Shown: piece after piece, positions 2,389 to 47,000 of the stretch
Numbering within the stretch: position 1 is the stretch's first letter
How the letters are laid out: every line of letters begins with the position of its first letter
Origin: Oculina patagonica
Lineage: Eukaryota
Length of the DNA stretch: 64,000 bases
Assembly (NCBI RefSeq): GCF_052425735.1
Contig: NC_135761.1
Location: forward strand, 7,998,001-8,062,000
Direction: 5' to 3'
Program-made: the position numbers and the translations under genes
The notes under the pieces: generated by a model
Seen by the model: only the letters and a program-made list of their open reading frames with translations
What the model was told of the DNA's origin: nothing
The model's database searches: none

Positions 2389-2401
2389 GGCCGTAACGCG
2401 T

Positions 2402-3002: not shown

Positions 3003-3317
3003 TTACCAACAGTAGGGTAAACCATACAAATCGAAGCTCCAGTGAAGGTCCACGTTGATATGTGCGATGTCGTGTCCCGGGTGTCGTGTGCGGTGAGTCA
3101 AGGTGTGTACGCGCATTAAATCAAGGTCGATAACCTGAAAGCGAGGCATTTTTGCTAACTCCAAAATCTCCCCTTGTACAGGCAGGACAACCAGTATGTG
3201 CCGAGGACACCACACGAAAAAAGGGATTCGTTTTCTTTCGTCGAACGCAACAACGAACGGCGCCGTTGCTACTCGAAGAAGTGTATACGTAGCTTCTATG
3301 AAGATCTGGTCTTCCAT
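3003..3317 (-). CDS. Possible orphan protein, ~104 aa (MEDQIFIEATY...LYGLPYCW)
   Basis: Clean ORF starts just after an acceptor-like catag|gcgatATG. A candidate non-coding first exon lies at ~5585-5423 (TATA-like tttataaag, TCAGT Inr, aag|gtaagt). No recognisable domain. Confidence 0.3.
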   Translation of the reverse strand: MEDQIFIEATYTLLRVATAPFVVAFDERKRIPFFVWCPRHILVVLPVQGEILELAKMPRFQVIDLDLMRVHTLTHRTRHPGHDIAHINVDLHWSFDLYGLPYCW

Positions 3318-4271
3318 ATCGCCTATGATCAAATATTATTTATACACCCTACCGAATATCTTGCGCTATGAGCAACAATAAATTTAATTCCCCTACAATT
3401 TTTGTCTTTTCTTTTTCCTTGATCGTCAGTCAATAAACTTAATTACGATTTAGCGAGTAAATTGTGCTAAGAAAACTCTGTTTGAAGAACGAAAATTTAA
3501 ATTATAACTGAATAAAATACAATTAGTACGTATACATAAAGGTTTCCATACCTGTTCTGTAAAAGGCGGCTCGCACTTATCTTTGTATTTTCTTCTGCTA
3601 AAAGATAACAAAGATAAAACTAAACGTTGTATTTTAACATAAAGAACCTTGCGGGAAAATATCCACATTTATTGCTTCGCTAAAGATAATTCTTTTTTCC
3701 AAAATTGGTAACAAGGGAAGAAGAAATTAAGCCGGGAAAAGTGATGACCTTGAATGACTGCAAAACATTGTTTCCGTTTGCCTTAGTTTTGTGACATGAG
3801 TGGGAAACGTACGCCCTGCGATGCGTCACTCTCAAATCTTCATTCTGCCGACATTTTATTTCTGAACAAATTTTGCCACGAGTTTGAATCAGACAAAATC
3901 CAGTTTAAATTGTTCCTCACAGAAATTTTCCAGGTGAAATCAAAGCAAATGTGACATCTGTAACAATCTCAATTTGTCAAGGTTTCCATAGAGTTTTGGG
4001 GGACGTGGGAGGGGTGGGAGGGCGGGTGCCGATTTCAACTTTTACGTCACGTTTTGTGCGTCGCAGCCGAAATGGAGCGCCCCCGTAAAGTCCAGACTTG
4101 ATATTTTGATTGCGACACAGACGAAACGACGGAAGCGCTTGCTGAATAGAAGAGTAAAGGGAATAAAATTCATTTTTAAAGATGATTGCGCGTTATGTAT
4201 TAACGACAACAACCTGACCAGCCCGTTCACTGCTAAATTCTGGGTCGTCATTTTCAAGTTGTCGGAACTTA

Positions 4272-4427
4272 TGGTGGATTTCCACTGACGCGTAATTTTT
4301 TAGGTGCGTAAAAAAATTAGAGACAATGTATGAACGGCTTGCATACACGTTTACGCAGGCCGTTCATACATTGTCTCTAATTTTTTTCACGCACGTAAAA
4401 ATTTACGCGTCAGTGGAAATCCACCAT
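4272..4427. mobile_element. Palindromic MITE
   Basis: tggtggatttccactgacgcgt...acgcgtcagtggaaatccacca, near-perfect hairpin flanked by TA. Confidence 0.8.
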
Positions 4428-20000: not shown

Positions 20001-23000
20001 TGTCCATTTTAGATTGAAGGGCTGATCTTCCCTATTGCGCCATGGGCCTAACCATATCGCTTTGGTTTTTGAAGTGTTTAGTTTCAGACCTGAATATGTC
20101 CCGAAATCGTTAACTATTGCAATCAAGTTTTGGACAGATAATAAATTATCACAAAAGGCTGATGTGTCATCCGCGAATTGACTTATTTTCGACTCTGTTC
20201 CAAAGATTGTGATACCTCTGACAGTTTTGTCTTGTCGGATCTTTGTGGCAAGAACTTCTGCAGCTAAGATGAAGAGATACGGTGATAAGGGGCAACCCTG
20301 CCTCACCCCTCTCGACAATTTAAAATAGTTTGTACAAAAACCATTGTTCAAGACGCTGCTCTCAGAGTTCGTATAGAACGTAGAGATCCATTTTTTAATG
20401 CCGTTACCAAAGTTGAACAGGTTGAGGGTATTTTGAATAAAAGACCATTCTAGGGTATCGAATGCTTTTTGAAAGTCTGAAGAGCAGATCCCAGGGAGAG
20501 CAGTATGCTTTTTGAAAGTCTAGAAGTAGCAGTATCCCAGGGATCTTTTGTAGCTCAGTTTGCTGGATTATGTCATTTATAAGCCTAATGTTTTGTCCTA
20601 TGTATCTCCCTTTCATAAAACCGGTCTGATCTGGATGGATAAGAGATGGTAAAACGCGTTCTATCCTCTTAGCGATAACTTTTGACGCTATCTTATAGTC
20701 TACGTTTAATAGCGTTATTGGACGCCAATTTGACAAAAACAACAAATTTGCATCTTCTTTGGGTAGAAGCGTGATAACTCCTCTTCGCTGGGACACAGAC
20801 ATTTCGCCGAAATCAAAAGCTGCATTTAGACTATTTACCAAATCCTGACCTAGGAGGCTGAAATATTGCTTATAGAACTCGGCTGTAAAACCATCGTCCC
20901 CTGGCGATTTCCCATTTTGAAAGGTGTTTAAGATTTTCTCACACTCTTCTAACGTTATTTCGCCATCAAGATTTGTCTTCTCCTCATCAGATAATTTCGC
21001 GAATTGTAAATCGCTACCAAAGTCAGTAAAAACATTACTACTGTGGTCAATATTCGAGCTGTACAAATTCTCATAAAAGGTTTGGATATCAGACATTATA
21101 TCCTGATCATGGACAATAATTTTTCCGTCAGACCTTTTGAGTTCCGATATAACTTTTTTATTGTAATTTTTTTTCTCCATGTTGAAAAAGTATTTGGTTG
21201 GCTTTTCACCTAGTTCAACCCATCTCACTTTGGAGCGAAAAATTGCGCCTTTGCCCTTGATTTCATAGAGGCGATTTAATTCATTTTTTAACCTGTCATA
21301 TTCTTTCAGTTTGTCTTCGGTATTTTGATTATCACTACTGTTGCTTATACTTTTGTCGATTTCGTCTAAGCGCTTTTGAAGGTCGGATTCTTGTTTGCGA
21401 AATTCTTTTGCTTTGCGAGCGGCGAAAGAAATAGTGATGCTTCTAATTTCCATTTTAATCAGTTCCCATCTTAGTCTTTTGTCAACTATGTTGGCATATT
21501 TCTCACTGATGATTGGATAGCTGTCTGTAATTAGAGTCAAGTAATTGTTGTCTTTTAAAAGTGAGTTGTTAAATTTCCATAATCCTGGGCCCCTTGACAC
21601 CTGGGATAACTTTAAACTGAGTTTGATTGCTTTGTGATCTGGAGTGATTGCAGTCTTTGTTTCAACGTTGTGGGCGTATTGAGTGAGGTGTTTTGCTATA
21701 AGAAAATAATCGATTCGCGATTTGACTTTCAAAAATTTAGACTCATATGAAAAACTTTTTGTATGGGGTTTTTGCTTTCGAAAAATGTCAATTAGATCCA
21801 GTTCTTCCATCATTGAGATAATACCATTCCGATAAGCCGTTGGTTTCCAACTTATGCCACCTTTCTTGTCAATGCTATCTAACGTAGCATTCCAGTCTCC
21901 ACCTACAATTAACTGTGTGATGTTTAAATTTGAAGTCATAAATTCGTTAAGAATCTGCAAGAATTTTCCTTGCGACTGACGGTTGGTAGGAGCATACACA
22001 TTACAGATAGATAGATTTACACCCCTGCAAATTACATCTATTGCAATAATTCGACCGTCAATGTCTTTGTAACTGTTTTCTACGTTTACGACAACAGAAG
22101 GGTTCACAAGAATACAAACACCTTTGCTGTGATTTGATCCGTGCGAGAAGAAAACGTCACCTCCCCATTCATTTTTCCATGCAAGTTCATCTTTTGGTTC
22201 TGAGAAAGTTTCTTGCAAGAGATAAAAATGGCAATTTTGATCTTTCAAATAACTAAAGATGGATCTTCTTTTGACACGGTTTCTTATACCTCTAACATTT
22301 AAAGTTATAAAATTACATTTTGGAGCTACCATAATCGTTTAAGGAAAGGAATATAGAATGTATTACAAAAAAAATATTGCTCATTTGCAACTCGATGCAT
22401 CTTTGGTAGCACAAAACAAAACATAGCAAAACAATAAAATAGAACGCGCGACACATTACAAGAACTACCGGTTTCCGATAATTTTCTTTTTTGTTTCATG
22501 CGGTCAGAATCAAATCGATCGCTGGAATTAAACCGAAACAAATCCCACCGAATCTGCCTAAGACAGATCACAGAGGAGTGAAATTGTGTACAATAACTAT
22601 ATACATTAAACAAAGTTCCAAGTAGAAAACACAATAACATTAGAACCGTAACGTAACGGGGAACAATTAATTTACAACTCAGGGGGCGATAATCTGAACT
22701 ACTCAACTCTGTATCACCTACCCAACGAAGACAAAATTAATCTATACTGATTAGTAACTTACATTTCCCCCTACGGTAAAAGTGAGGCCAATAATGACAG
22801 GATGGTTGAATTGTCAAAGTTCCTTGACGTCGTCGATCGAAAACATTTGTCTTGGTCTTCCAGTGGGAGAAGTTTTGACGAATAGCTTCCCGTCGAGCGA
22901 CCAAGTGCTTAGAATCTTCCCGTCTCTTCTTTTCTCAATAGCCAGTTTCATCATCTCGCTTCGGTACCCCGTTAGATTTTCGTTAATGAAAATACGCTGA

Positions 23001-26000
23001 TCGGCCAGGCTTGTTCCCGAGTAGCTCGGGAAGATGGTGGAGAGAGTTACATCTTTTAGACGAATTCTCGCCTTGTAACACTTTGCCTTGTCCTTGTGAT
23101 TAGCAAATTTGGCGATTATTGGCTTGATTCCTTTTTTTCTGTTTAAGCGATGGGAAATCTCGATTTTTTCCGGTTCCATCTCCACGCCTACCGCCTGAGC
23201 CACCTTGCAAACTACTTCATCGGTTGTAACACCTACATCCTCGGGAATGCCATGGAATTCGAGAGAGTTTTTACGGGAGTACTGCTCCAACTCGTCAAGG
23301 TTCGCTTGCAGGTCATCAATGTCACTCTTTTGTTTCTTTGAAGCTTTTTTTACACGTTCAAGTTCCAGTTCCAAAGAAGCGACATATTTGTTTTGGCTTA
23401 TCAATTCTTTCTTTAGCTTTTCGACTTCGCCGTTATTCTTCGCGATGTCCTTTCGAAGTTCAGCCACTTCACTTGACAGTTTGTTGTTGTCCTTGGCTAA
23501 CTTTGCAATATTGCCTTGAATCGCAGTAATAGCGCCTTGGATGTTTTTTAGAAGATTGTGGATGTCTTTGAGATTTGGTTCCATGTCTGGCTCTTCTATT
23601 TCCTCCTGAATAGCTTCCTCGTTAAGCGGAGAAGAAGCCGCCATATTTAAAATGTCGCCACGTGCTTGTTTGGAATCAGGCGATACTCCTGATCCGGAGA
23701 CGGCACTCCGTTTCATTCTTACTTGCCATAAGAAGTTTACACGATAGAAAGAGCGAACGGCACGAATTTTAGTCGAAATATTGCTTGAAACCACTTCTTG
23801 GGCAGGTGATACTGCGGAGCTCAATTATTTGCGTCCGGCCATGATGAGCCCCCCCGCCAAAAGATGCCCATTTTTAATTTTTTTTTCGTTTAAGAAGTGA
23901 TACCATAGTTGTTTCAATTCAAAAAACGTTTTGCCTAGCTGCTTATGCACATGTACAAAATGCACTTTTTGGTATTGTACATGTAACCACATCCTGATTT
24001 GAAAAAGTGGCCTATATTATATTTAACAATTATTTCGACTCGTAAGTGAAATTGTGTTCATTTCTGTATGTTCACAGTGCTTCCTAAGTTTGAAGTGAAA
24101 GTAAACCTTCCAGCATATGTAATTGAGAAAGAGAGTAAACTCACTGGTGCTGTTGATGTCAAGTAAGTTGTTTTCATTTTTTTTTTTTAATTTAAATCTT
24201 GTAACTTAGTGTCTTAATACCATAAGAGTTCTGGAAGTCACAACCCCCTAAAAGAAACGCCCCTTGATAAATAGCGATAAATTTTATGGTTGTTAGTAAA
24301 TCCCTCAAGTACCGGTAGTCGGTGTCTTTCTGAAAGTAAGAACTTTCTGTTTTTGTGATATCTGAAGAAGAACCTTAAATAATCTCACTCATTTTTTAAT
24401 TCCTTTCTTCTGTTAGTTAATCTGTCCACATACTATACTTTATTTTCCAGCTTATTTTCACTAAATTATTTATTAAGTAAACTTAATTACATGTAGTTTT
24501 TGTCTGTATGTTTGTGCGAGCACTGTATATATTATCCTAAGTACCTGACCCATTTTAGAAATTATTGTATTAAACACTAAGGATGGCTGCCCAATCTCAT
24601 TAGCCAATGGTGATTATTTTGGGCTGTCATGCACTTCCTTTTATAATTTTTATTCTTCTTTGTATTGTAAATTTAGTTTAATTTAGGGTGCAAATAAAGC
24701 GTTGTTGTTGTTGTTGTTGTTGTAAGCTCACAGTACCATCCAAACGCAGCTGTAAGAGAACACAGCTGCCTCTTATACCACTAACAAGAACATTAAAAAA
24801 CTGATTACTTCTGACCAATTTTTATTAAACCCCCCACCCTACCAAAACACCTAATATGAAATACTCAATTGTATTTAAGTAGAAGTTGTGTCCTTGTTCT
24901 TAAATTGGCCAAAGTGTTTTTAAGTTACATGTAGAAAAGTTACTTGTTTTTAAAAGCTACCCGAAAGTTGTGACCCTCCAAAAGATACAATAACAAGTCG
25001 GCTATACCTGAAAGTAACAAGGGCAGTTATTGGTTATCAGTTGCAGACCCCCTCCCCCTTTTAGTTTGCCTGTTAAATAAATCATAACTTATAACACTTA
25101 CTGTAATTCTTCGTAAAAAAAATAAAATGCTATAAAAGGTGATCTTAGGTAGATCCATCATTTTAAATTACAGATGGCCATCAACCTTGATGTTCATGTT
25201 TTAAGTTGAAATCAATTTTTTCAGAACTTTTATTTTTTTTGCCTTTGACCATTTTACCAAATTAATAAATTCTGTTATGGACTTTTTTTTCTTATTTTTC
25301 TTAAAGGTACACATATGGCAAGGGAGCTAAAGGAAGGGCAAATGTTCAAATTTATTTTAACTCATATGGACCAAAGAAAATCTCACTAGCTAAAGACATT
25401 CCTGTAAGTTCTAATGATAGAATTAAATTTAATTTTCCCTAAACACACCTTAAGAGGACACCGTACTTGATAAAATTATACAGCATACAAGGATGCAATC
25501 ATCTGAACTTAAGTGTACAAGAATTTTTTTTAGACACGGTTATCATGATCTTACTACAATGATTTATTTTTTAAGTCAAATCTGGCCAGAATTTCTCAAG
25601 CTTCATATCCAGCTACATTTTGTAAACCCAATGTAAATAGTTATTAACTTAACTTACTGCCCTATACGCCATTGGCACTAAGGGCAGCGACAAAGTTTCT
25701 CCACACATGCCTGTCACGAGCTTTCTTCTCGATGTCTCCCCAGGTGTAGTTTAGGGTTTTAAGTTCGCTTTCTACCATCCGTCTCCAAGTTGTTTTTGGT
25801 CGTCCACGCTGTCTTTTTCCTTCAGGTGTCCAATGAAAAAAAATAGTTATTAAGTGCAGCATAAAAACACTGGTGGTTCCGCACTCATCATTATTGTATT
25901 TTTTTTTTAAGAAAACCAGCAGATTCTATTATATTGGAATATTTCATTAATGACACTACATAACAAATATTTTTTTTGTCAATTTGCCACAAAATTAGCT

Positions 26001-29000: not shown

Positions 29001-32000
29001 CAGGCTGGTGATAATATTGCTTTGGATGTGGAAGCCACCTTCACACTCTCAGAGTTAAAATACATGGTATGCTCACTGTTCTATTAACAGTAGTTGATTA
29101 GAAGTAATTTAATGAGTGAATCAATTTATAATGCAAAGCTATGGCAAAACTATTAAAGCTATCTGAAATTTGGCAAAAATTAATGAAAAGTGGCAAGTTA
29201 ATAAATTTATTCTATTTTTGTTTTTGTTTTGTGATTAGGTGGTGGCACGTGGAATGTCAGCAGAAACAGGCACACATGTTGTATCTCCTGGCTCCACCAA
29301 AACTTCATTCACTATCCCGTCAAAGCCAGGCATGGCTCCCACTGCTCGCTTGTTGGTCTACAGCATGTTGCAAGGTGGTGAGATTGTGGTGGACTCTCTG
29401 AATGTTAAAATAGAAGACCCTTTTCAAAATCAAGTAAGGATCTAAGTGTATATGTCTTTTGTATTTATTTGACATAATTTCATCCCATTTTGAAACACCA
29501 AGAAGAGAGTTGAAAGTTTATGATGCACTGTGGATTAGTTTTGATATACTACTAGGTGTTTGAAGTAATATATCAAACATGAGAGACAGTCTTTCATTGG
29601 GATATCCAAACACCAAGAAGAAAGTTGAAAATACCACATGCAGCAGAGTATTTTTGACGAAATTCGGGGTATTTGGAAATCAATGTCTGTTGGTTTTTAT
29701 TCTCAAAAAAATCTATGCTAATTAAGACCAGGTATCCAAACCTCCTTCATGGTTACGATTTCCTTTGTTTTAACTTGATGAATTGTTAATGAGTTTGAGA
29801 AAGTGCATTATGACACACTCTCGTGTGTGTTTAATATTAATTATTGCCTCAATTCAAACTAAGGAGTAGATGTAAATGGAGAAATACAATTTACATGTTG
29901 AACCTACGGTATTATGACCAGACCAACATCGTTGTTTAATAATAATTATAATTAATAGTACAGACCAATGAACTCCATTTGGCACTATACATACTGTGTT
30001 GCTTGCAGTTCTGTCTTGTATAGGATTTTCAGTGGGGCTGTACATTATACACAGCCTTGACTTTGTAAATTCTACTTCAGGTTTCAGTGACCATTGACAC
30101 AAATAACAAAGATAGTGTCTCTCCCGGTGATACAGTGACCATCAAAGGCAAAGCGACACCAGGATCTTTTATGGCCTTCCGAGCAGTGGACAAGAGTGTG
30201 CTTCTTATGAAAGAAGATACTGATCTCTCTGTTAGAAAGGTAATTAATTTAATTTATATGGAGCCAATAACTGCAAGAGGCTGTAGATGTGTTTTCTATA
30301 ATACTGAGCAGCGAAATTTAAGTTTGAAAATAGCACCGTCAAGGCTTGTCAAATGGTTTAGAAGAATAATTTTTTCTCACACCGTTAAGCATTTATTTTC
30401 AGACTTGCATTAAAGGAGAAGTACTCGAAACTCCTTGTTTTTTTGTATTTCTTGGAGCTCTGTTTGAGCAAAATAGAGATGCACAAACAGGCATTTTGAC
30501 AAACAAAAGCCACTACGAAGAAATAAAGGAGTTTCGAGTATTTAAATTTTCCCGCCAAACTTCAGGCTGAGCTCTTTGAGGTCATGCATACATTACCAGC
30601 TCCAAGATGGTGGTGTTCAGTTATCGAGTTTTGAGAAAGATTTTGTAGGGTTATAGCGCATGTTGGAGGCTAAAATTTTGGTGAATAACATGTCTTTGTT
30701 TAAACGTTTTATTGGCGTAAAGAAAATAAATGGCCCTTCTGGACCGGAGTGAACCTCTCCTTTTAGTTTTTTTCATCTTTGATCATTAGCAGTTCTAGCT
30801 GATTAGATCCTATACACTGGGCTGTGTTCAAATCCTTCTCACTGTCATTAGATGGAAAAGGATTTGTTTGGTGGTTCGGAATTCACTTTTTTCATGCTCT
30901 AATTTCTTCAGTTAAAGGATCCAGTCCTTCCATTTTGCCAAGATGAACCTGGCAAATTGTTGTTAACTTTCTTTTTCAAATTTAAGTTTGCAATGTTTTT
31001 GTTTAGGTTCTTGAAGATCTTCAAAGTTATGATTCTGCCCAAACATGGTATCCATTTTGGGAGTGGGGCATCAGGCGGAGCCGTCGAATGATTATGCCTT
31101 TTCCAACTTCGGGACGCAGTGCAGCTAGAATCTTTGAGGTATGTGCATCTAATTAGAAGTTAATTCATTGCTCTAAAAACATATTTAAACTAAGTTTGAT
31201 TTCTTGATATCAAATGGAAGGAGAAAGCAAATGTTCCTCATTAATATTGATCTGTCTTGGAAACTGGAGATGAACCTTAAAATTCCATGTTAATGGTCCT
31301 CAATTTTCTGATAGAATAATAATCTGGCATACCTTATTATAGGAAATTAATGATACATGTTATTAACGCAAATTTCAAAAATTCGCGTTAATTTTATTGA
31401 TGTTAATTAATATAAACACGTTTACCATAAGCATTTAACCAGAACTTTTCTTAAATTCGTGGTAATTCTATCATGCGTCAATTTTGTTCGCGTTGTTAAA
31501 ATGCCTCGTTATATTCCTATAATAAGGTATATATGACCATCTGAATTGCATGCTGTTCATTGCTGGACCATCTGTGCCCTTAATATGCATTGCGTGCCTA
31601 TAAAAAGAAATCCAAGACATAGGCTTCTATCTCTTGGCCTTTCGGCCAGCTCTCAATTAGCAGCTAGACGGCAATCAAACTAAGTGAAGTATTATCTGAA
31701 GTGTGGCAAGTTTAACATAATTTGTTTTGGCAAATCTTTATTGCCAGTTTGTTGTTTTTGATTCTTGTTTCATACACATTTTCCAAGTTTAGTGGCTTAT
31801 AGCCACTTTGATTTACCACTTTAATTTTGACCCATTTCATATTTTTACTTCATAGAACTCTGGTGTTATTGTGATAACTAACTACAACTTGCCAGGAGGC
31901 TATGATGACTATATGATCATGTATGGTAGACGTCCAGTCATGGAAGGTTGGTGCAGTTGAATAAAATGCTTCATTACTAAGACATCTTTTGTAAATAATG

Positions 32001-35000
32001 TATTTTTAAAAAGAAATGTAGGCACATAAATTGACAGATTGTTTAAATCCGCAGCGTCAAATTCATTTCCATTTGGGTAGTTTCCAAGTTGCCTTTGGCC
32101 TCTGTTTCAAACTGTTTCACAGGAAGACTCGTTCTGCCTCAGAGGCAAAAGGCAACTCAGAAACGGGCTATTACCATGGGCTGTGGCGACAAAACAAGAA
32201 AGCAAGGTCTACATTTATAGAGGTTAAAATGCAGTAAAGAAAAAAATGATAGAACAGTTTATAAAGTTCATCTCAGGATCACAGCCAATCATATAAGTAA
32301 AAAAGTTGTTTATTATAAGAAAGATTATAAAAAATAAAAATCATATTAGGACAGACATTGTTGATGGACGTAAGGATTGCTTAGTTCCTTGCCCCAGGGT
32401 GGGGGATAGGGCCGGAGGACGTAAGGAATGCTGCGATTTATGAAAGTTCTACAATCTTCAGATGAACGTGAAAAGTCTCTGAAACAAAAAGAAAGTATAT
32501 AAATGTGATGGGAGCGTTTTCAGTTTACATACTTACTAAACCTCCTTTGTGTCTCTTGCCTTAAGCCCTGACCAAGGAGCAACGCAAGTAGACGCAAGAT
32601 GAAAACTTGCGTCTACTTGCGTCTCCGTTTGGCCAGGACTTGCGTGCACTTAAACTGAATTGCGTTCACTTTAGTCGAGATCAAATTTGCACTTAAGTTT
32701 TTCACCGTTTGGCCACCCAATGCAAGTCAAGGCATTTTTTCCAGTTTACTTCAAATACTAAATTGCACCTCGCAGCATTTTAAATGGCTTTTTGCAAACT
32801 TGCTTGCACTTGCGACTAAACTTGCCTGTTTGTTTGGCCAGCCAATGCAAGTCTGTATGCAAGTTCACCTTGTGATTACTTGCGTTCACTTGCGTTACCG
32901 TTTGGCCAGGGCTTAACCTGAGCAGTGTGATGTCCAATGATGATTTATTTTGTTGCTACTGTATGATAGCAGAAGCAGATGATTCAGACACGTTGGGAGG
33001 CAGTGTTGGCGGTGGAAAGCCAGAACTGGCTGAAGTAAAGCGTGTCAGAAGTTTATTCCCTGAAACATGGATTTGGTTGGAATATGATGCAAGGTAGGGA
33101 ACTTTATACTTCAGGGTTGCCACGGTCAGGGAATAACAAAAAATTTTTAACGTTAGGGAATTTTGCAAAAAGTTAGGGAAAATCTAAGCTCTTGTCGAAG
33201 TCAGTGAAAAGTCAGGGAATTCAAATGCCACTGATGCGTTCAAAACCTTGTAAAAAACGTAAAGAGATCGAAAATGAAGAGAAGACTATCGATGGTCTGG
33301 AGAAGAAGCTGAAGCAAATGTAAAAGTGGCTTTGGCTTTGCTTATTTTAAGGTCAGGGGGGAAAAGTCAGGGGATTTTTTTGGTTCTAATGAGTGGCAAC
33401 TCTGTAACGGGTTAGGGACACAAACGTACCCCTCTCGGACAAAAAAGTGGGTTGCTCCAAAGGAATAATCATCATATTCCAACCAGTTTTACGTTTCAGG
33501 GAATAAACTTCTGACACGCTTTACCTCAGCCCGATGTGGCTTTCCACCCGGCGCCGGCATTTTTTTAACTGGATCAATGAATCAGCTGCGCTATCATACA
33601 ATAACGAAATAAACCATTATTATATGCCATACTTTCTGACATAGTGATACGCAACACAAAAAAAGTTTTGCAATCATAAGATTAACATGAAAATGCGCTG
33701 AAACAAAAAGAAAGGATATGGATGTGATGGGAAGCGTTTTCAGTTTTCCATACTTATGTGAGCCTCCTTTGTGTTATTGGCTGACCTGACCAGCGTGACA
33801 ATGATTTATTTTGTTGTTATTGCATGATAGCAGGAGCAGGTGGTGGTGTAGATATGAGAGAAAAATCTAGCGGCGGTGGAAAGCCTGAACTGGCTGAAGT
33901 AAAGCGTGTCAGAAGTTTGTTCCCTGAAACATGGATCTGGTTGGAATATGATGCCAGGTAGAGTACTGAAAGAGGGAAATGGGGGAAATGTGGTAGGTGA
34001 AACATTCCCCTCTGGGACAACCCAATTGCAGGTTTAATCATGGGCTGCACCAAACGAATAATCATCACATTTCAACCAGATCCACGTTTCAGGGAATGAA
34101 CTTCTGAATCTGGCTGAGCTCCTGCTATCATACAATAACAACAATATAATCCATCAATGTCAAACTTTCTGATATAATGATATGCTATGCAAAAAAGTTC
34201 TACAATCGTCAGATGAACATGAAAAGTCGCTGAAACAAAAAGAAAGGATGTGGATGCGATTGGGAGCATGTTCAGTTTTCCATACTTACTGGGGCTTCCT
34301 TTGTGTCTCTTGCGTTACATGACCACCATGACATTGTCGTTTTTGTATGATAGCAGAAAGAGCTGATTCAGAGATCCAATTTAAGAGTGCCGGCGGTGGA
34401 AAACCAAAACTGGCTGAGGTAAAGCGTGTCAGAAGTTTATTCCCTGAAACATGGATTTGGTTGGAATACGATGCCAGGTAGGAAACTTACTTTAGCGGAT
34501 AAGGAATAGAAACTTACCCCTCTCGGACAAAAAACATGGGTTGCTCCAAAGAAATAATCATCATATTCCAACCAGATCAACGTTTCAGGGAATAAACTTC
34601 TGACACGCTTTACCTCAGCCACTTCTGGCTTTCCACCGCTGGCATTGCTCACTGGATTTCTGAATCAGCTACGCTATCATACAATAACAACAAAATAATC
34701 CATCAATGTCAAACTTTCTGATATAATGATATGCTATGCAAAAAAGTTCTACAATCGTCAGATGAACATGAAAAGTCGCTAAAACAAAAAGAAAGGATGT
34801 GGATGCGATTGGGAGCATGTTCAGTTTTCCATACTTACTGGACCTCTTTTGTGTCTCTTGCGTTACCTAACCGGCACGACAAAGATGATTTATTTTGTTG
34901 CTATTGCATGGCAAGCAGCAGCTGTTCCAGGCCTCCGAAATAGGGCCGGCGGTGGAAAGCCAAAACTGGCTGAAGTAAAGCGTGTCAGAAGTTTATTCCC

Positions 35001-38000
35001 TGAAACATGGATCTGGTTGGAGTATGATGCCAGGTAGGGAACGTACGTTAACGCATTAGGGACACTAACGTACCCCTGTCGGAAAAAAACATGGGTTGCT
35101 TCAAAGGAATAATCATCTTTTTCCAACCAGATCCACGTTTCAGGGAATAAACTTTTGACGCGCTTTACCTTGGCCAGTTGTGGCTTTCCACTCAGCGCCG
35201 GCATTACTCAACTGGATCTCTGAATCAGCTGCTCTTTCTCCTCTGCAGGCTACTCCATTTAAGCCTTAATATTGGGTATCCTGTGTAGCAGAGGGGAAGA
35301 GAGAAAACTGGGACTTGTAGAGAGGAAGACTGGGGATGTAAAATGTAAAAATGTAAATGTAAATGTTGTTTATAGTGGTCATGCACTTAGCTTCATATCT
35401 CAACGAGATAGCTAGTTTACAGGCATGCCACTGAAACAGAGGAAACAAATATTTTAAATGAAAATAACAAGGTTAAAAATCCCAACTGGCAGGAGGCAGA
35501 CCAGTTGGCTATGTACAAAGCGTGATCGAGGATTTGAGCTCGGGACAACCGAGAAACAAATCCAGCTAGTGGCAAGGGCAGGTGGTCCCAGTCTTTCTTC
35601 CGTAACAAAGGGAGTTGCCTGCTGAAGAGGGTACAGCTGCGCTATCATACAATAACAACAAAATAAACCATCAATGTCTAACTTTCTGACAAAATGATAT
35701 GCAATGCAAAAAAGGTCCTTCAATTAGTAGGTGAACATGAAAAGTCGCTGAAACAAAAAATCAAACAAAAGGATATGGATGCAATTGGGAGCATGTTCAT
35801 TTTACCATTCTTACTTGGCTTCCTTACCTGGGCTGACCAGCGTGACATTGATGGGTTATTTTGTCGTTATTGTATGATAGCAGGAGCTGCTGATTCAGAT
35901 GTAAGAATAGCCAGTGCTGATGGTGGTGGTGCAAAGCCTAAACTGGCTGAAGTAAAGCGTGTCAGAAGTTTATTCCCCGAAACATGGATCTGGTTGGAAT
36001 ATGATGCCAGGTAGGGTACATTCAGTAAAGAGGGTCCAAATGGAAGAAACGGGGTAGGGACACAAACTTACCCCTCTCGGACAATCCCATTGGAGGTTCA
36101 ATCATGGGTTGCACCAGAAGAAAAATTCTACACTCTGCAGTAAGAATTTGTTACTTGGTACTGAAGGTGTGTCAGGTATGCTGACCCAGTGATACGTGCA
36201 TCACCCTTTGGATCAAGCAGTCCGAGTTCAAGCCCCGGCCGGGATCATTGTAATGTGCTTTTGGACAAGACACATTCCTCTCTCAGTGCCTCTCACCACC
36301 CAGTTGATTAAATGATTACTGGTGTGTTAGAGGAAGCCTAAAAAATGGTGGGGGTGCTGCGATGGGCTAGCATCCCATCCAGGGGAGAAACAATACTCCT
36401 GGTCACTTTATGATTCTAAGTCTTAAATTATGCGCCGGCCTGGCAGTCAAGGGCTTAACCTCCTGGAAAAAGTTGGGCAATCCTATCCTGGGCTCAACTC
36501 TGGGCTGCACAGGAAAAATGATTTTCCTACACTCAATCTTCACAAAGACGTGCTCTCAATACTTTTATTTAAAAAAATACAGAAGTGAGTAGTCACTGCT
36601 AGGGATAAACAGGTTGAAAATTTAAAACTTGCTTAAAATTCCAGCAAACAGTCAGTGTTTCTGATGTTGTCAGTTCTGCAGGGGAGGTTGAATTCCAGAG
36701 GGCTGTCCCTGACACACTGACTACTTGGGTAGCCAGTGCTTTTGCTGTGTCAAACTCTACAGGGCTGGGTGTTGGAGAACTTAAACCTCAGGTAGGTCTC
36801 GTATGCATAGCACAGTATACAGGAAAGCAAGAAACGTTCACAAAAAAAGTCAAAGAGGTGGTTTGAAAATATACTTCTTGACTGGGTTAGCTCAAGGCGG
36901 ACGGGATCATAATTATTTGGCTGTCTCGTACGCCATGACCTGACCCAAATATTTTCGCGTACAACTAACACAGCGACGAGGAGCTTTATGGCTCAGTTGA
37001 TAGAGTATCCCACAAAGGTCCTGGCTTCAAATCCCATTACAGCCTCGAAATTGTTTTCAGGCTTCATTGCTTGCAAGGACAACTACGAGGACCATTTGTT
37101 AATTACAATTAAGTCTTTAATTTTGTGGCCTTCAGGTTCAAGTGTTCCAGTCCTTCTTTGTGTCACTCAACCTTCCATACTCTGTTGTTCGTGGTGAAGA
37201 GGTCGCTCTGCAAGTCACGGTCTTCAATTACGAGTCTGAGGCGCAGCTAGTGAGTATGCGTTGTTGACAGCCAAATATATACCGGTACCCAACAAACGTC
37301 TCCGTGAACTTAGTAGCGCGATCTGTTGGCGCAACCTGACGAAATACTAGGAAGTTACTTGCAATACTCCCGGCCTATTGAATCCCTATAAAAAGAGGGT
37401 TTGATTTCTTTAGTAATGTGTAGGCTTATTCAAGCCAAGGTGTGTTTTCCCAGATACTTTCGTTCTTGCCCGTTCTTTCTGGTGTTTTGAATGTGAATAT
37501 TACCCGATGATAAAGCTATCAAAATCGCTAATTTCTTGATAGGCAGTACAAAAAAGGACTGCTCAACCCTTAATTTGAGGTTGGAGTGCTCACTCATTAT
37601 TTCAACTTTTAGGATATAGCAAGAAGTCATTGCAGTGCAGCTGAAACGTCCACCAAACGGCCTACAGTGGGCTTTTTTTTGGCTACAGTCAATCATACTT
37701 GCGACGTCAATTTTCTAAAAACTGATTGGAGGTGTTACCCTTGTGACGCCATTCTGTAATATTTGGTTGCTTAGGTAACCAGGAAAATCGGCATTTAAAA
37801 GCCAGCTATTAGTAGGCGGTTGAATTTCTCAGTCCGTGCGTATTGCAAAACTTTAAAGCTGATTTCCAGTCCGTACTGCGCAGACTCGGGGTTTGTTTTC
37901 GTTTTTGTTTTGAATTCGTTGAAACGTTACACTTCGGTGACAGCATACATGACGTTTTTTAGTCCGCCATTACGGTTCGTTTCGTTCAAGAGTTTCCGAT

Positions 38001-41000
38001 GAGCTGAAACGTCGGTTTGAAATAGCGTCAAGGTTCTTCTACTCTTTATTATTTGTTCTGCAAGGATATCTGGCGTTAATAATGAAGAAAAAGGTAAGTT
38101 TGTCGCGGAATTTTTAGTTTTGCTTGTAAACATTCCCTTCGAGTGGGCTCACATAAACATTGCAGCCGAGATTGCGCAGTACGGACTGGAATTCATCTTT
38201 AAGTTCGGACGTATTTCAAAACTCTGTAAACAGATCGAATGTTTGGTTGCTTAATAGGTAACCAGGGAAAATGGCATTTAAAAAGCCAACTATGGGTAGG
38301 CGGTTGAATTTCTCTGAAACACAGGTTCCCTGCATGAGCATTCTGTCAATGAGCAAACTATTGTTGCTTGTTGTCAAGGTAACCATTACACTGAAAGGAT
38401 CCAAAGACTGGGCCATCATTGATGAGGTCAACAAACTTGGGCTAAGAGGCGAGAATTCCGTAAACAAAGATTATGTGGACAAAGAAATGGACCTTAAAGT
38501 CGAGATAACTGTGGGAGCTGGTCAAGGAAAAGCCGTGTCTTTCCCTGTGGTCCCTAGAACTTTAGGCCTCGTGCCAATTGAAGTGCGAGCTCAGTCCTCG
38601 AGGAGCGCTGATGCTGTCAAGAGAAACTTGCTGGTGGAGGTAAATATTGATTAATTAGAATGAACATTTTTGTCATAAGTGTAGTAGCCTCCTACACTGA
38701 AGTTCTTTTGGCTTGTCACGCAATCCAGCGATGAGGGAAGAAAGGATTGCGTGACGAGCCGAAAAAAAACATCTGTGTGATAGGCTATAAATGTAGTAAA
38801 CACCGTGAAACTCACCACTTTAAAGTTGACTGTTGGAAGGATTTGGCGTAAACACAAAGCCAATGCGGGAGAAAGCGTGTGAAAAAATTGGTGACACAGA
38901 AAAAAAAAGAGATGGGAGGGGGCGCTGGTTTTTAAGAGACTGTTACCCTTCCCACCAGATATATTTCTTTTGCTTCATTATCTGATTGGTTTATTACACT
39001 CTTGCTGTTACACTGAAAGGTAACAACGTTGGTTCTTGTCTTATCACTTTCAAGAGGAAAGTGGTGAGAGAACGTTCTTTATGTAGAGACACTTTACTCA
39101 CACAGCTTTGACTTAAATATATTTATTGTATTTTTTTCTTAGCCCGAAGGAGTTCCACAGGAATACTCCATCAGTATGTTGTTGGATCTTAATTCAAGTA
39201 AGCAAAAACTGTTACCATTTTAGTTCTAGTGTCGATTTTAGTAAATTATTGCTTAGCAACCTCTAACTTTCTAACAAAAATCGCGAGCTCAGTCATTTCT
39301 CAGAGACATCAGACTAGAAATGGTCTTTATCACTTCTGCTGCATAGATCCAGAACTCAGCCGGTATAAGTTCAAATTTTTCACGAAATTGTTCACTTAAC
39401 ATGCTTTACAGAGAATTTTATTTTGACCGTGTTATTCAAATACTTTTTTGAATTTTTATTTCTTTTTATCGTGTATTAAAAGCAATTTTTTATAAAAAAA
39501 AAAATTTTTCTATTAAGATTAGGCGCTTAGTGTGCAAGAGTAAAACCTAGAAAATAATTAGTGAGAGATGAAAAAAAAATTCCAACAATTTAACTGGTAA
39601 ATTTCTATCAGAATGTTTGCCTTTGTTCTCACAACCTTGGTTAGTCTTCAATCTCACCGTGACTAACCGTTGTGTGACCTTGTTGCAGCCTCAAGCCTGT
39701 CACACACAGTGGCTCTTAGTGTGCCACCAAACACTGTCAAGGGATCTGCGCGAGCGACAGTGTCAGTGATGGGTATGTTTCATTTCAGAAGACGAAGTGT
39801 TCAACATGAGTAATTATTTTGTTCACAATCATTGCTAGCAAACAGTTTTCAATTTAGCAGTTTGAAAATGCCAGCTCTTTCTCAATGTTCAGTACAAATT
39901 GTAGCTTATGTGTAGCTGTACCCACCCCCCCCCCCACCCCGAGGTAAAACGGACAGGTGGGGGGGGCGTGGTACGGCTACACGTAGGCTATACAGTTTGA
40001 TGACTTGCTCTTATATTACTGGCAAACGATTTTTTTGGTTAATTATTCTCTACGGGTGATTTTTCGTGATCTCAACTTGCTTGGGAGTAGGTGGAGTAGC
40101 TTGGTTGTTAAAGCACGCGACGGCTGGGAACTGGACACCAAAAAACGTATTCTGTTTCGTCATTGAGTCATTACATGTAAGACCACCCTGGATATCGATA
40201 GCGTCTCATTTCTCTAACTGAATTAATAACTCTTTCTCTTTATGCGGAGGCGTAGTTATCCTCGATTGAGGGATGCCTATACGAGTTGAACTGTTGTAGA
40301 TTTTATAACATTTTTGACTCGTACGTTTTCAATCGCCCCTGGTACCAGCTCTGTGTTTGATACAATCTCATTAACAAATAAAGCCATCGCTCAACGCGTA
40401 ACGCTTTCAACGCGAGCTGCCTCTGTGATTTGTATGACCCATTTGTCTTGATTGTTAGGTGACATTCTTGGTTCTTCCATAAACAACCTGGATCAGTTAG
40501 TGCGCATGCCCTATGGCTGTGGAGAGCAGAACATGGTGAACTTCGCTCCGAACATCTACGTCATGAAATACTTGAAGACTGTTAACCAGCTGACTCAGAG
40601 TATCCAAAACAAAGCCAAAAACTTCATGATCGCAGGTCAGTGATATTGAGTTTGTCAGTGCCTATTAGACCTGTATTGATCCGGCCGTGATATTGTGAAC
40701 AGGGCCTTACGGTTTTCAGACCAGGTTGAACTGTTCTTGAACTATTCACTTTTTCATCCGTGTGCCCTCCCCCCTCCCCAGGGATATTTGAGTCAACACA
40801 AATCTACAACCCCTGACAAAAGTGTTGGGAACTTTTGCACTTCTGTTCCTCCCCTACCCTCCTCCATTCAATGTTGAGCGAAAAGCACACACATGATTGT
40901 AAAGTAAGAAACCAACATTGATAAGAGGGAACGGGGCGATATTAGAGAAGTACAGTAATGGGGGGTGGCTACATTGAATTCGAAACTGTCTTTAATAGGG

Positions 41001-44000
41001 CATGTTTTGAGAACCATCCCAACTATTTTTGACTGGGATTGTAGAATGTTCCCTGTTCTTGTTTTGTTTCCCTCCACGAACTTATTTTCTCTTGCATGGC
41101 TTGGTACCGAGCCTAATTAAATCTAGCATGTGAAGTTTAAGTAAAGAACAGTGGATTAAAAAAACTAATTTTAGTAGTGTGAGATGGAGGGGAAATAAGT
41201 CGATCCCGTACTGTTGGGGTGAAGTGGTGGGGTTATGACCTGAAGGGGAATCGAAATAGGTTCGAGTTAGCGGGAGGTTTGAGTTACTGAGGGTTCGAGT
41301 TATCGGGATTCAAGTGTATTCAATTCTTGGTTACATGATGCATTCTGTATGCGTCAGAATTCTGTGCAGTTCGGGGTTGTGTTTGAGTAACCTTAGGTTA
41401 AGTTTTTCCTTTGATAATATCTCAATTCCTTTACAGGTTATCAACGTGAACAGACCTATCGCCACAAGGAAGGTTCTTACAGCGCTTTTGGTGAACGTGA
41501 TGGGACTGGAAGCATGTGGTAAGAACTGGACCGTAGTGTTAACCCTGCGCCCCAATATCCACACAAAAATTTTCCTGACTGATCGCCATACATTTTCTTG
41601 TAGTATTAGTTGGGAGATTTTTGTTAATGTCGTAAAACCAAAACCAAAGTAATCACTCTAGTCAATCACAAACAACATAGACAGTCCAGTAAACCAATCA
41701 AAACTCATAGGAAATACATGTAGCTGGCACGAAGTGCGGGAAAATGTGCACAATGTTGGAAAGCGAGAGCCAAGCAATTTCCCTTTGGTGATCATTTTAT
41801 AAATTCTCTTAAGCCTTTCTCGGTCTTGATTAAGAACTGTTATTGTGAGGAGAAATGTGATGTTGGTCACTTTTAAGACTTGAAGGGATAAGGAACTGCA
41901 GACTGCAGTCAGACGCTTTAACACCTACAACAGAATAACTTTTATGGAAATTTGTTTGCGTTCAGTGGCTAGTTTGGAACTTTCCATTTACTTGGAGCGG
42001 TTTCTTGTCTCTTCGTAGGCTGACTGCGTTTGTTGCGAAATCGTTCGCACAAGCACGAGCATTCATTCCCGAATACATAGACGACAAGTTGCTAGAGGAA
42101 AGCCTTGCATGGATGGCTCGTCAAACTAACAGAGATGGATCCATCAAAAAAGTTGGCCAGGTTCACAGCAGTGTGCTGAAGGTACGCTACTTACTACCGC
42201 TAATTTGTTTTCTTCGATTTAAAGAATACATTATCCAGGTTGGTCGATATACGGAAGTTGTCTTCCATTCCTGTTGCAAGACTTTAACATCTTACAGACA
42301 GACAGACAGACGACAGACAGACAGACAGAAGAAGAAGAAGAGGGGGCGGGCGCGGGGAGACAGACAGACAGACAGACACTTTATACAGAATTCATAAAGG
42401 TTGCACTTATTTACAATGCAGCAGAGCTGTGCGTCTAAAATTAATTTATTCAAGTTAATCTAAAATAATTTAAAACAGTATAATTAAAATAGTAATACTT
42501 ATTCCAAGCAGGCTATAAAGTATGTAGTACGGTTCTTTTTTCTTCTTCTTAGAATTTAAGTGTAAATATTTTAACTTTAAATAGCTTAGATATATAATAA
42601 TGTAAATAGTGTCCACAGTTTTCAGACACTTTAATAAAGTATTTCAATTTCAAATTTCAAGACATCTTGCCAGTGTAGTAAACGTCTGTTTCTTTGTGTT
42701 TTAGGGCGGTCAGACGGGTGTTATTTCTCTTACCGCATATGTGCTCATTGCTTTGGCTGAAGCGAACTCCAAGTCTCGGGTAAGATGTGGTGGAATTGGT
42801 GGGTGTAGGGGCAGAAACAAAAAGAGGAAGAAGAATACGCGAACGTGTCACCAGCAATCAACAAAGTTATGATATCTTGTTATAGAATAATGCATAAATA
42901 TCCACTTATTCAAGAAGTTCGTTGTATAAGGCACAAAACAGATGTTCCTTTTTATTTTCAACCGAATTACTAAGTCTGCATTTAAAATTAAAGTGCGACA
43001 GACGTGGCTGTTAAGTGCTATAAATCTGAAAAGAAACCTTGGAAATGTTTGAGTAGGGTCATGTAGAAATGGCTGTGTGTATAAAAGCTAGTGACAATCT
43101 AAAGGTTATCTAAAACTCTGTATATCTTATGTCAGAAGCTTGTTGGGGCACAAAATGTATATCAGAAGCTTTGCTGTGCAAGCCATATACAAGAAAGCTA
43201 TCGATTCGTTATTTTTTACACGGTTACATTTGTTTGCATTGCAGGCTGTCATTAATGCCAAGAATAACGCAATAACTTTCCTGGAAAACAAGGTTAACGC
43301 GATGTCGAGTGATATAAAAGACTCCTACACCTTAGCTATCACTGCGTACGTATTGTCTTTGGTTGGAAGTGCTAAGAAGACAAAAGCCCTTACAGAACTG
43401 CGTAAAATGGCTATTGAAAAAGGTTAGGCTAAAATATGAGGGGATGTTACTACAGAATAGCAATGGTTAATGATGACGTTTTCGTTGTTGTAACCTTGCT
43501 TTGCTTTAAAGCATTCGCGGGAAAATTCTCGTTTAAGCAACAGATATTGGTATGGCTCTGTATTCTTGCTTTAGCTAGAATTGTGCTTGTGCTCATCAAG
43601 TATTCGCACCTTTGCAACGAGAAGAAAGCTGGGGCGAGTCTTATCTCGTAGTGGCTTGTGGGACCGTTGCTGGGGACAATTTGGCTACATCAGTATCGGA
43701 CCCACAAACAAGGGGAGATGCACCCCAGATTTCTCGTTTCTGAAGAGGGGAGTGTTAAAGGCGTTGTATAGACCTCTGAGTCAGGGAAGCGTGGTGACCT
43801 AAAGTGTTTAGTTAGTGCACTTGATCCCGGATTGAGCGGTCTGGGTTCAAGCCTTAGCCGGTCACTGTGATGTGTTCTTGGGCAAGACACTTTACTCTTA
43901 TAGTGCCTCCCTTCACTTAGGTGTATAAATGTGTACTTGCGATTTTAATGCTGGCGGGTAGCTCTGCGATGGACTAGCATCTCATCCAGAGGAAGTAGAA

Positions 44001-47000
44001 ATACTCCCAGTCGCTTTATGCTACAGTAACCGGCATTAGCTCACTCCTGGTGGGCGGCCCACTAGGCTCGTATGTAGACTTTACCTTACCCTTAAAGACC
44101 TTTGAAATTTTTTGTTTCTATATCCTGTACATGTTATGCCTGCGTGCCTTTATGCGAGTCGCATTACATATTATTCTGCTCAACGTTTCAGATGGTCTGA
44201 TTTACTGGGAAGAAAAGCAAGATGTTAGCAAACCGAGCGACAATCCGTGGTTTCGACCATATTACCGGCCTCGCTCGGCTGATATCGAAATCACTGCCTA
44301 CGCTCTGTTGGCTTACTCGGTAAACAAGGACATCAGTGTCGGCCTGCCAATATCACGCTGGTTATCCCAGCAGAGGAACTCAATGGGAGGTTACTCTTCA
44401 ACTCAGGTATACTATATCTCATTTACAGCTTTTGTAAAATATCTTTTCCAAGTTGTGCTGTTATTTCACCATTTGCTACCAGTTACATATTTCCTTTGGT
44501 TGTCGCTTGTTTAGTGTTTTCCGCGCTTGCCACCCGTGACGCGTTTTCCCGCGCTTCTTAGCGGATGCAAGCTTCCCGCGCTTTCCTTTGCTGACATGTT
44601 TCCCCGCACTTGCCAGTGGTTACATATTTTCCCGTGCTTCTCGCCGTTTACGTGTTTTCCCGCTCTTGCTAATTGTTACAAGTTTCCTGCCCTTTTCACA
44701 GGTTACATACAGTCGATTACATGGTTTCCCCTGTTAGTTTTTTTTTTTTTTGTCACTGGTGGCATGTTTTCCCGTTCTAGCCTTGTGATAATGGGTGGGA
44801 GGGTTTGCCACCGATTACAGCCCCCCCCTCCGAGATAAATCTTCCCGGCCTTCCATTTTGTTTGTTGCTTGGGGTCGTGGTTATTTGCTTTGTAAAAACT
44901 GGTTGCAGTTTTGCGACAGTCATAAGAAAAGTAATCAATGAATGCATTTTTCAATTTCGTAGGATACCGTGGTTGGCCTCCAGGCCCTCTCGGAGTTCGC
45001 CGAGCTGATTTATACCCCGGATATTGACTTTACTGTTCAGCTGTCTTCGAGTGCAGATTCTAACTTCAGGAAAATAATGACTGTCAATCAACAGAACTCC
45101 ATGGTACTGCAGTTAGTGGAGGTAATACATTATTCTTACTTAATTTCATGAGTTATTATTATACAGTCAACTCTCTCTTAACGGACACCTCTATAAGACG
45201 GACACCTCCATAAGACGGACACCTGGTTATGGTCCCTGCCGTTTTTCAGTCATTTTACCGTAAGAAAACTCTCTGTAAGACGGACACCTCTCTAAGACGG
45301 ACAACGGACACTTTGAAACCGCCAACGGACAGGCATTAAAAGTTATTTTTTCGTGAATAATACTTCAAAACTTGTTATCGACATATAGCAAAGCAGGTCA
45401 GCGCCTTTAGAATACCAAATTTACCAAAAAACAATCCGCTAAAACGCATTACTTCTCTGCTTAAACTTGTAGATTTAGTTTTCTACTTACAGTATCACAG
45501 TTTGTTATTAACAAACAAGTCGAATCTCTGATATTATTTAACGTAAGCGACTAAAACAGACGTGTATTCGTTGTGCATAGCCGTTTAGCTTTATCGTCTC
45601 AAAATTTCTGGTGTCACGTTACCTCGACTCTCTATAAGGCGGACACCTCTATAAGACGGACAGTTGGGGCCGGTCCCGACGGTGTCCGTCTTAGAGAGAG
45701 TTGACTGTAATCCATTTATTGTAGTCCTACAGCCTCGAATTAACTAGTGTTCTGAAAACTTGTAAATTTGTAAAAGTCTGTGAACGAAATCTTATTAATT
45801 AACCATTCAAATGAAAGCTAGTGAGTAATAAATTAATGTGCCACTATATATAATGCCGTACGAGGTGCTTGAAACTATTTAATTTGTGGATGAAAACCCT
45901 TAGGTGTGAACATCCAAGCGTAATGGATTCAATAAAAAAATCTGTGGATAAATTACCATGCGAATTTTTGAACTTTTGCGCGTGGAGTTGTTCGTGATTT
46001 TTACGATTACAAGAAAACACGAAATGAAAGTGTAATGTAACAGTTTCAATAAAGACGGTTTGAGTAATCAGCGAGTAGCAACAGTTTATTGTTTTTCTTT
46101 AACAGATTCCAAATGTGGCTGGTTCCCTTTCTGTGTCGGCAAATGGGCGCGGAATAGGAATGCTACAGGTAAGATATAAAAAGCTTAAAACACGTGTATA
46201 CAGTCGATATTCTTTTTATACCTCTTAGAAAACCAGCCTTGGAAGCGGTTTTAAAAAATTAGGGGAAAAAAAAGGGGTACTATATACCACCACCTCGTGC
46301 AATCGAAGAGATACGAAATCTCTCAGGTTTGCCTGGTGCAAACACAAGGGCACGGGAATTTCTCGTTTTCAAAACTTTTCTGAACAGTAAATAAGTGAAT
46401 TTTCAGTGTGAGTTGTACCTCCAAGACCCATCCAAGGCCACATAATCCAGCGATTTGCTTGAACCTCGCCATAGCTTTCCTCGCGAACACTCGTCGCGCT
46501 CTCCTTGGCACGCTGTCCTCGCGCGCATAGTTATGGGAGCACTCTCCACTGTTGACTTAGTCGCATGATAAATGGCTGTCGTTATTTCACTTCAGGTCGG
46601 TGTCACTTACAATGTGGACAAAGCTCCTGACGAGAGTTCTTTCGATTTCTTGTTGGAAGTCATCCGGGAAACTAAGTATGAAATCGAGGTCAAAGCGTGC
46701 TCGATGTGGAGTGAGAACGACCAGGATTCGGGTATGGCCGTCATGGATGTCGGGATACCCTCGGGATTCGAACTGGACTGGAACAGTGTCGAAAAGGTAA
46801 CGATGGACACAAAATTAATAGCTCTGTGGCTTCTTTTATTGCTAAGAGAAAATATGTCGCAGAAGTTCTTTTGTGTGTGACAAGTAACGCAATTTCTGTC
46901 CAATAGATTGCGAGATGACAAAAGAATCTCCTCATGTGAAAGTCGAGTTAATCAATTGCGTATAGTTGTTGTTTTTCTTTATCTCATCCAGATCATGTCA

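Follow-up and report, generated by a model that had tools for sequence, protein, structure and literature searches.

A bait-region cassette array with interleaved inverted exon copies in a CD109/TEP-like gene of the coral Oculina patagonica, and a probable duplication-junction origin of its N-1 pattern

Arrays of alternative bait-region cassettes are the means by which several invertebrates diversify thioester immune proteins. To our knowledge, how one cassette is chosen from such a set is understood only for a few arthropod genes. Invertebrate arrays of mutually exclusive bait-region exons include those of Biomphalaria BgTEP2 (12 exons) and BgCD109, Chlamys CfTEP (6) and Drosophila Tep2 (5), and these published TEP arrays are described without interleaved antisense exon copies (PMC7016707). 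Competing RNA structures built from a docking site and selectors are known from Dscam exon 6, 14-3-3 zeta, Mhc and srp (PMC6071210, PMC4691838), and Ivanov and Pervouchine proposed that tandem duplication of one stem arm creates competing selectors (PMC6071210). Here we analyse 64,000 nucleotides (nt) of Oculina patagonica DNA (contig NC_135761.1, positions 7,998,001 to 8,062,000; hereafter the window, whose own numbering is used throughout), in which five bait-region cassette exons of a plus-strand gene (32970-36010) alternate with four inverted copies of themselves. An earlier note on this DNA had proposed that the inverted copies, being one fewer than the exons, form a counting device that masks every exon but one. 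Our analysis indicates that the array and its gene belong to a known kind and that the interleaved inverted copies are unusual; a limited literature search turned up no report of inverted copies of exon length set between alternative exons. The geometry of the array suggests that the four inverted copies are non-coding intronic fragments derived from a duplication junction. The duplexes that they could form with the cassettes are, on balance, best read as a by-product that is tolerated and that would do no more than modulate which cassettes are used; they probably are not what guarantees one cassette per transcript.

Repeat search and alignment gave the order A-inv1-B-inv2-C-inv3-D-inv4-E, that is, five forward cassettes and four inverted copies, just as the earlier note had described it. 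The five direct copies start at 32999, 33863, 34383, 34939 and 35916 (spacings of 864, 520, 556 and 977 nt). Fifteen inverted pairs, 78-90 nt long and 85-93% complementary, link the forward copies to the four inverted ones, whose segments in this search lie at 33470-33548, 34063-34107, 34559-34648 and 35114-35191; the acceptor regions are linked by separate inverted pairs. When insertions at ~33111-33404 and ~35239-35625 are removed, the unit measures about 520-590 bp (originally given as ~520-570 bp). In the alignment, the homology of the inverted copies begins about 45 nt before the acceptor AG and extends as far as the GATG located 4 nt ahead of the donor. Pyrimidine tract, AG and exon body all have their complement in every inverted copy, in agreement with the extent of complementarity first reported, which ended about 4 nt before the 5' splice site.

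The cassettes, all on the plus strand, occupy 32970-33093 (A, 124 nt), 33831-33957 (B, 127 nt), 34354-34477 (C, 124 nt), 34916-35033 (D, 118 nt) and 35881-36010 (E, 130 nt, the last of the series), and the acceptor context of D has changed to ggcaag. Between them, on the minus strand, lie the inverted copies J1 to J4 (inv1 to inv4). J1 (33470-33625) comprises the exon part and the acceptor arm, with an in-frame stop and a 4-nt insertion. J2 (34063-34162) retains 45 nt of the exon part, the 5' two-thirds of which are gone, together with its acceptor arm (34117-34162). J3 (34559-34711) is the most intact copy, and 85 nt separate it from the matching arm of exon C upstream; small deletions shift its frame. 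The exon part of J4 (35114-35238) contains a 4-nt insertion and is separated from its acceptor arm (35641-35678) by an inserted repeat of about 390 nt (~35239-35625). The deleted and the interrupted copy therefore both keep the acceptor arm, as had been noted. The accompanying statement that all four copies have lost coding capacity needs qualification: all are frame-broken relative to the acceptor, but in inv3 and inv4 the frames are still open across the conserved part and are shifted relative to their acceptor. Loops of roughly 100-200 nt, longer where an insertion intervenes, had also been anticipated between each inverted copy and its neighbours, whereas the conserved arms are separated from those of the upstream exon by 84-109 nt in the case of B, C and D and by 380 nt in that of A, and from those of the downstream exon by ~300-740 nt. 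As the earlier note stated, no exon-complementary copy precedes A or follows E in a search of the flanks, and the sequence to the right of E (36027-36135) holds a remnant of spacer and of the element that we call the extension.

An erroneous assembly, in which a collapsed or mis-joined repeat created the interleaving, can be dismissed with near certainty. In its favour, no short-read DNA run contained more than 53% of the words sampled from the array (runs labelled 'coral metagenome' contained half). However, independent contigs from four RNA runs span the exon-spacer-J and J-linker-exon joins at 95-100% identity (34435-34595, 35010-35125, 33605-33917 and 34695-34901), and the copies carry distinct substitutions, indels and insertions.

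To follow splicing, we used contigs from four public RNA runs (X1, X2, X5 and X9) aligned to 30900-36899. A constitutive exon at 31007-31138, which follows the A2M bait-region domain, has an open frame and is covered by contigs in all four runs; a GT..AG joint (31136 to 31854, for which a cut 2 nt further right fits equally) leads to the constitutive exon directly upstream of the array (31856-31946), which ends after the first base of a codon. From 31946, contigs of X1, X2 and X5 join to cassette E, and a contig in X9 lies on E. An X9 contig also runs from the upstream constitutive exons into cassette C. On the other side of the array, B is joined to the downstream exon in X1 (33954 to 36671, depth 89, skipping GT..AG; the cut fits 3 nt further right), and C is joined to it in X2 and X9. 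This downstream constitutive exon (36674-36793) is covered in all four runs. RNA contigs lie on A (X1, X9) and on D (X2) as well. Splicing uses as acceptor the AG of 'gatag', which precedes the CAG by three bases. No joint from one cassette to another was present among the 15 joints listed of 21, which derive from assembled contigs and not from long reads. Expression is thus not confined to one cassette, since B, C and E are spliced in these contigs and A and D are represented, and the description of the array as expressed alternative bait cassettes of an immune-type thioester protein is borne out by this RNA evidence together with the A2M/TEP/CD109 domains described below.

The lengths of all five cassettes are of the form 3n+1, which gives them an identical splice phase. 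Translation of any single cassette together with the upstream and downstream exons gives a frame that stays open throughout, whereas skipping every cassette or joining B to C makes the frame run into stop codons. Because of this arithmetic, only single-cassette mRNAs are productive, and judged from the sequence nothing beyond the reading frame is needed to explain why a productive mRNA has one cassette. Unproductive mRNAs would presumably be removed by nonsense-mediated decay.

The number of inverted copies may have an equally simple basis. Homology with the array starts at ~32420-32432 in the linker, which is the point where the internal inverted copies have just ended, and stops at ~36126-36140, which is the point where they are about to start. 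The left end of the array (32420-32563, plus strand) is the 3' part of the inter-unit linker and is 83% identical to 34732-34865 and 34183-34313, and no array homology was found left of 32420 in the flank search; the right end (36027-36135, plus strand) consists of spacer and extension and is 77% identical to 33969-34062. We infer from these boundaries that the array has the form X-J-X-J-X-J-X-J-X, or X(JX)4, in which X comprises the 3' part of the linker, the acceptor arm, the exon, the donor, the spacer and a 45-nt extension, and J, which would be a duplication-junction fragment, comprises the inverted acceptor arm and the exon up to 4 nt before the donor. In such an arrangement the N-1 count is automatic, because the junctions between tandem copies always number one fewer than the copies themselves.

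The simplest history that would generate this form has two steps. First, a single duplication would have left an inverted fragment at its junction, as can occur by replication template switching. Second, unequal crossing-over between X copies would have added one J and one X in each round. The outcome would be N exons and N-1 inverted copies, with no selection on the ratio required. Template switching of the type known as fork stalling and template switching (FoSTeS) or microhomology-mediated break-induced replication (MMBIR) gives duplications with an inverted junction fragment and is usually described in pathogenic human rearrangements. The coral array resembles those products in its X-J-X layout, in that J inverts part of X and in that homology ends at the boundaries of J; it differs in that here the event would have seeded an array of alternative exons.

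Several features of the copies fit a single ancient inversion that preceded amplification. In the alignment, the J copies have states in common with one another. At two synonymous sites the J copies keep G, as do the relatives L001, L005 and L006, whereas most forward exons have A. Units B and E have common indels in spacer and extension. Furthermore, the variable halves of the forward cassettes have diverged to 57% identity, while those of the inverted copies are not diversified and all resemble exon C, which indicates that diversification was limited to the coding copies. The uniformity of the variable halves of the inverted copies also led us to reject the idea that these serve as gene-conversion donors for diversification. 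A role as exons of a minus-strand gene was likewise rejected, given that the inverted copies show depth at the level of pre-mRNA, that their borders are unused by joints and that all are frame-broken relative to the acceptor.

The extension precedes each inverted copy (33425-33469, 34010-34062, 34515-34558 and 35068-35113) and occurs once more at 36060-36135. It is 85% conserved among units yet complementary to no exon. Its first bases, CTTACC, complement the cassette-donor sequence GGTAGG about 35-40 nt upstream, and on the minus strand it reads as a good donor (GGTAAGT). We considered and rejected the possibility that it is a relic of a longer ancestral exon, since the short exon and the position of its donor are common to all outgroup loci.

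We then considered what the inverted copies could do in pre-mRNA. One unit (34300-34880) folds into a single giant hairpin of -243 kcal/mol, compared with -134 +/- 6.6 for shuffled sequences (z = -16.5), so the complementarity is not due to chance; all 20 exon-J duplexes lie between -99 and -209 kcal/mol, compared with about -49 on average for shuffled controls. Neighbours are not preferred, and every J pairs about equally well with every cassette. Folding therefore predicts that any J could form a duplex of well over 100 bp with any cassette (up to ~130 paired bases in the large fold), in which pyrimidine tract, AG and exon body would all be occluded. Such duplexes may play a part in splicing. 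Five nested states in which one exon is free are pseudoknot-free, with summed energies of -615 to -657 kcal/mol and the state with E free as the lowest. In the minimum-free-energy fold of 32400-36700, the partner of inv1 is C, that of inv2 is B, that of inv3 is A and that of inv4 is D, while the body of E remains single-stranded.

These predictions bear directly on the proposal that four antisense copies, maintained by selection, cover four of the five cassettes and that the uncovered one is spliced in. The stability of duplexes that cover tract, AG and exon, the similar energies of the five states, the single free exon body in the minimum-free-energy fold and the absence of a cassette-to-cassette joint among those listed would all be expected from such a switch, as would a weak excess of conservation and of G-U-preserving transitions in J (see below); nor was a classical docking site found. 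That four maskers can cover at most four exons is true but trivial, as is the existence of five corresponding states. However, we regard the switch as improbable. The geometry of the junction alone yields N-1 copies, the pairing lacks neighbour specificity, and the reading frame already explains exclusivity, so the N:N-1 ratio does not stand as evidence of a counting device. In addition, inv2 is largely deleted, two of the copies are disrupted by insertions, and both fixed differences between forward and inverted copies create A-C mismatches. Other TEP arrays work without inverted copies (L041 and L043, described below; PMC7016707). Finally, each of A-D would first meet its own downstream J during transcription, after only 84-109 nt in the case of B, C and D, so these local hairpins should form first and E is expected as the default, yet B and C dominate some runs.

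Cassette usage in the four runs also speaks to a milder role, in which hairpins between exons and J copies would weaken the usage of A-D or adjust the proportions of the cassettes without enforcing exclusivity; for example, E could be the default and the other cassettes conditional on helicases or RNA-binding proteins. E, the sole cassette without a downstream J, turns up in each of the four runs, and X5 contains almost no other cassette. The hairpins have high stability and lie near the exons, and conservation of J is modestly raised. On the other hand, X1 has more of B than of E, the depth of C in X2 and X9 is similar to that of E or greater, and C is not silenced although its partner, inv3, is the most intact. 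The depths behind these comparisons derive from assembled contigs and are hence crude, and genotype may vary between individuals. We view modulation as a possible but rather unlikely function of the copies. The 5' end of cassette E (35881-35888) itself varies by run, with contigs that read CAGG or CAGAGGG where the reference has CAGGAGC; these variants are in-frame differences in bait-region length among individuals.

Several points weigh against our preferred reading of the duplexes as a tolerated by-product of duplication. The junction model derives from two coincident boundaries and not from a dated duplication history. Duplexes of this length over 3' splice sites would be expected to influence splicing, and masking of A-D would likewise be consistent with the presence of E in every run. 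Nor did we find another mechanism by which a cassette is chosen, and a coarse test of duplex energies gave no docking/selector signal above shuffled sequences. The inverted copies also show weak signs of possible constraint. Compared pairwise, the units are 92% identical in the conserved exon halves and 88% in the matching parts of J, with values of 85% in the extension, 81.5% in the linker and 66.5% in the spacer, and J as a whole diverges somewhat more slowly than other intron sequence (~84 versus 78% pairwise), with significance in two of six pairs. Changes in J, read on the plus strand, comprise eight C>T and five A>G compared with one G>A and one T>C, such that transitions that keep G-U pairing outnumber those that break it by 13 to 2; the corresponding numbers in the linker are 22 and 17, and p is ~0.1 when linker rates are taken as the expectation. 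Selection for pairing might produce such a bias. However, nine similar copies lie within 3 kb, and gene conversion among them could account for the slower divergence; two fixed forward-versus-inverted differences create mismatches as mentioned above, and the extension is conserved like J though it pairs with no exon. Constraint on the J copies is thus weakly indicated, as a hint only.

Long predicted duplexes raise the further idea that the inverted copies give rise to exon-complementary double-stranded RNA, which would feed small-RNA production or be a substrate for A-to-I editing in the bait exons. Editing complementary sequence (ECS) elements of ADAR targets and stems that sequester splice sites are single stems of modest length that are conserved across species. 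Like them, the coral array holds intronic sequence complementary to an exon and its splice site, which would form a stem in pre-mRNA; it differs in having four near-full-length inverted pseudo-exons in a young array, and an editing signature was not found. Over the four runs, A>G is the top class of RNA-versus-reference difference (in X5 it shares first place, and in X9 T>C is ahead of it), in a comparison of RNA contigs with the reference genome and not of matched DNA and RNA from one individual. Inside the cassette arms, A>G differences in RNA contigs occur at 34403, 34407, 34989 and 35920. However, the sites in exon C (34403 and 34407) recreate states of other cassettes, which points to alleles or gene conversion, and unspliced contigs across the hairpins (34435-34595 and 35010-35125) lack A>G clusters. 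A-to-I editing is not supported by these observations, and we consider a function as a source of double-stranded RNA very unlikely.

A docking-site/selector system elsewhere in the introns could instead pick the cassette and leave the inverted copies irrelevant. This mechanism is established in several arthropod clusters (PMC6071210, PMC4691838), and linker sequences are repeated upstream of every cassette in the coral array. Nevertheless, duplexes between flanking introns and linker or spacer sequences had energies no better than shuffles in a coarse test, and we assign this explanation little credence. The array shares with docking/selector systems the principle that pairing would expose only a subset of exons at any moment. 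Those systems use intronic elements of tens of nucleotides, with one docking site and many selectors, and activate the chosen exon. In the coral array, by contrast, the arms are exon-length (~130-170 nt) and include the exon and its 3' splice site, and the competing arms would be the exons and the inverted junction copies, in N versus N-1 numbers, with masking as the predicted effect.

Comparison with other loci places the inverted copies in context. About ten related coral loci (among L001-L007 and L085-L097), taken from metagenome and Logan contigs, carry a single cassette, flanked by the same exons, and lack an inverted copy; the closest come from metagenome scaffolds, several of them named TARA. 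They show 77-94% identity in the conserved exon half and have the same donor position. A search for orthologous arrays by means of the antisense and linker open reading frames (ORFs), together with a metagenome scan, yielded only single-cassette relatives and unrelated arrays. Because the sampled relatives have single cassettes without inverted copies, the array and its J copies appear to be young or confined to one paralogue.

The unrelated arrays are TEP cassette arrays with splice-donor-like ends on two eukaryotic contigs, L041 (8 copies) and L043 (4 copies), and no exon-length inverted repeats were found in either. L041, a GC-rich metagenome contig, carries eight tandem TEP bait cassettes at 900-6000 (...VTRVRQEFPE[AST]WIW) with GTA donors and a spacing of 380-1109 nt. 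The four-unit array of L043 (100-1359) has units of 300-390 nt and a conserved 66-nt intronic element upstream of each cassette, which is a candidate selector-type element. Since inverted copies are lacking in L041 and L043 and are not described for the published arrays, they are not a general requirement of TEP cassette arrays. In other respects the coral array closely resembles those of the TEP/CD109/A2M family: it belongs to the same gene family, occupies the same protein position and consists of tandem cassettes for a hypervariable, protease-sensitive region, with a variable 5' half, a conserved 3' half that ends just after FPETW and, probably, one cassette per transcript. It differs in its interleaved antisense copies and in its apparently recent origin.

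The array is a natural experiment, in which antisense copies that are predicted to hide 3' splice sites lie between cassettes. If the copies matter, they would represent a new route by which tandem exon duplication becomes mutually exclusive at once. The first duplication may have left an antisense copy that masks one neighbour, such that the exon pair was exclusive from the start, and later expansions would have kept N-1 maskers that pick a single cassette; we think it doubtful that this undescribed RNA counting mechanism operates here. If the copies do not matter, the locus would indicate that the spliceosome tolerates duplexes of well over 100 bp over alternative exons. Under either outcome, the X(JX)n geometry provides a simple rule to apply before 'N-1' repeat counts are interpreted.

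The domain layout around the array, as read from the sequence, identifies the locus as the bait-region cluster of a plus-strand gene for a CD109/TEP-like thioester protein (A2M/TEP/CD109 family). Pfam matches on plus-strand ORFs place A2M_BRD at 29239-30210, TED at 40452-44511 and A2M_recep at 46572-46877, and the cassettes (32970-36010) lie between the first two. This is the order of the A2M/TEP/CD109 family, in which the bait-region domain is followed by the variable region, the FPETW motif, the TED and the receptor-binding domain. The thioester exon (40452-40640, plus strand) encodes GCGEQ within an ORF that contains PYGCGEQNM and matches Pfam TED_complement (E = 4.6e-20), and the TED domain continues past it through 42005-44511. 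Among solved structures, human CD109 is the best match to the thioester exon (E = 1.2e-20), followed by alpha-2-macroglobulins and insect TEP1. A search of representative proteins with an MG-domain exon returned only short single-exon fragments and no full-length protein.

The introns around the cassettes contain other repeats. An Rfam scan of 31000-37500 gave no match. The insertion between linker and cassette A (32563-32914; ~32564-32920) holds three copies of a ~42-nt motif and an internal inverted match. Intronic stretches at 31300-31700, 32300-32900, 35300-35700 and 36300-36500 reach RNA word depths of several hundred to ~8,000 in peak bins, far above those of the exons and with many loose ends, and are evidently copies of abundant interspersed repeats; no further copies of them were found within the window. 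Two of these high-depth repeats (~35239-35625 and ~33111-33404) are the ones that interrupt array units. Further downstream, an intron of the TED region carries a (CAGA)n-type microsatellite (42274-42438) that reads as an ORF of TDRQ repeats. On the minus strand at 18555-23824, just upstream of the TEP exons (26058 onward), three long ORFs (598, 642 and 336 amino acids) resemble a retrotransposon without long terminal repeats (non-LTR), with endonuclease/reverse-transcriptase-like text and a coiled-coil ORF.

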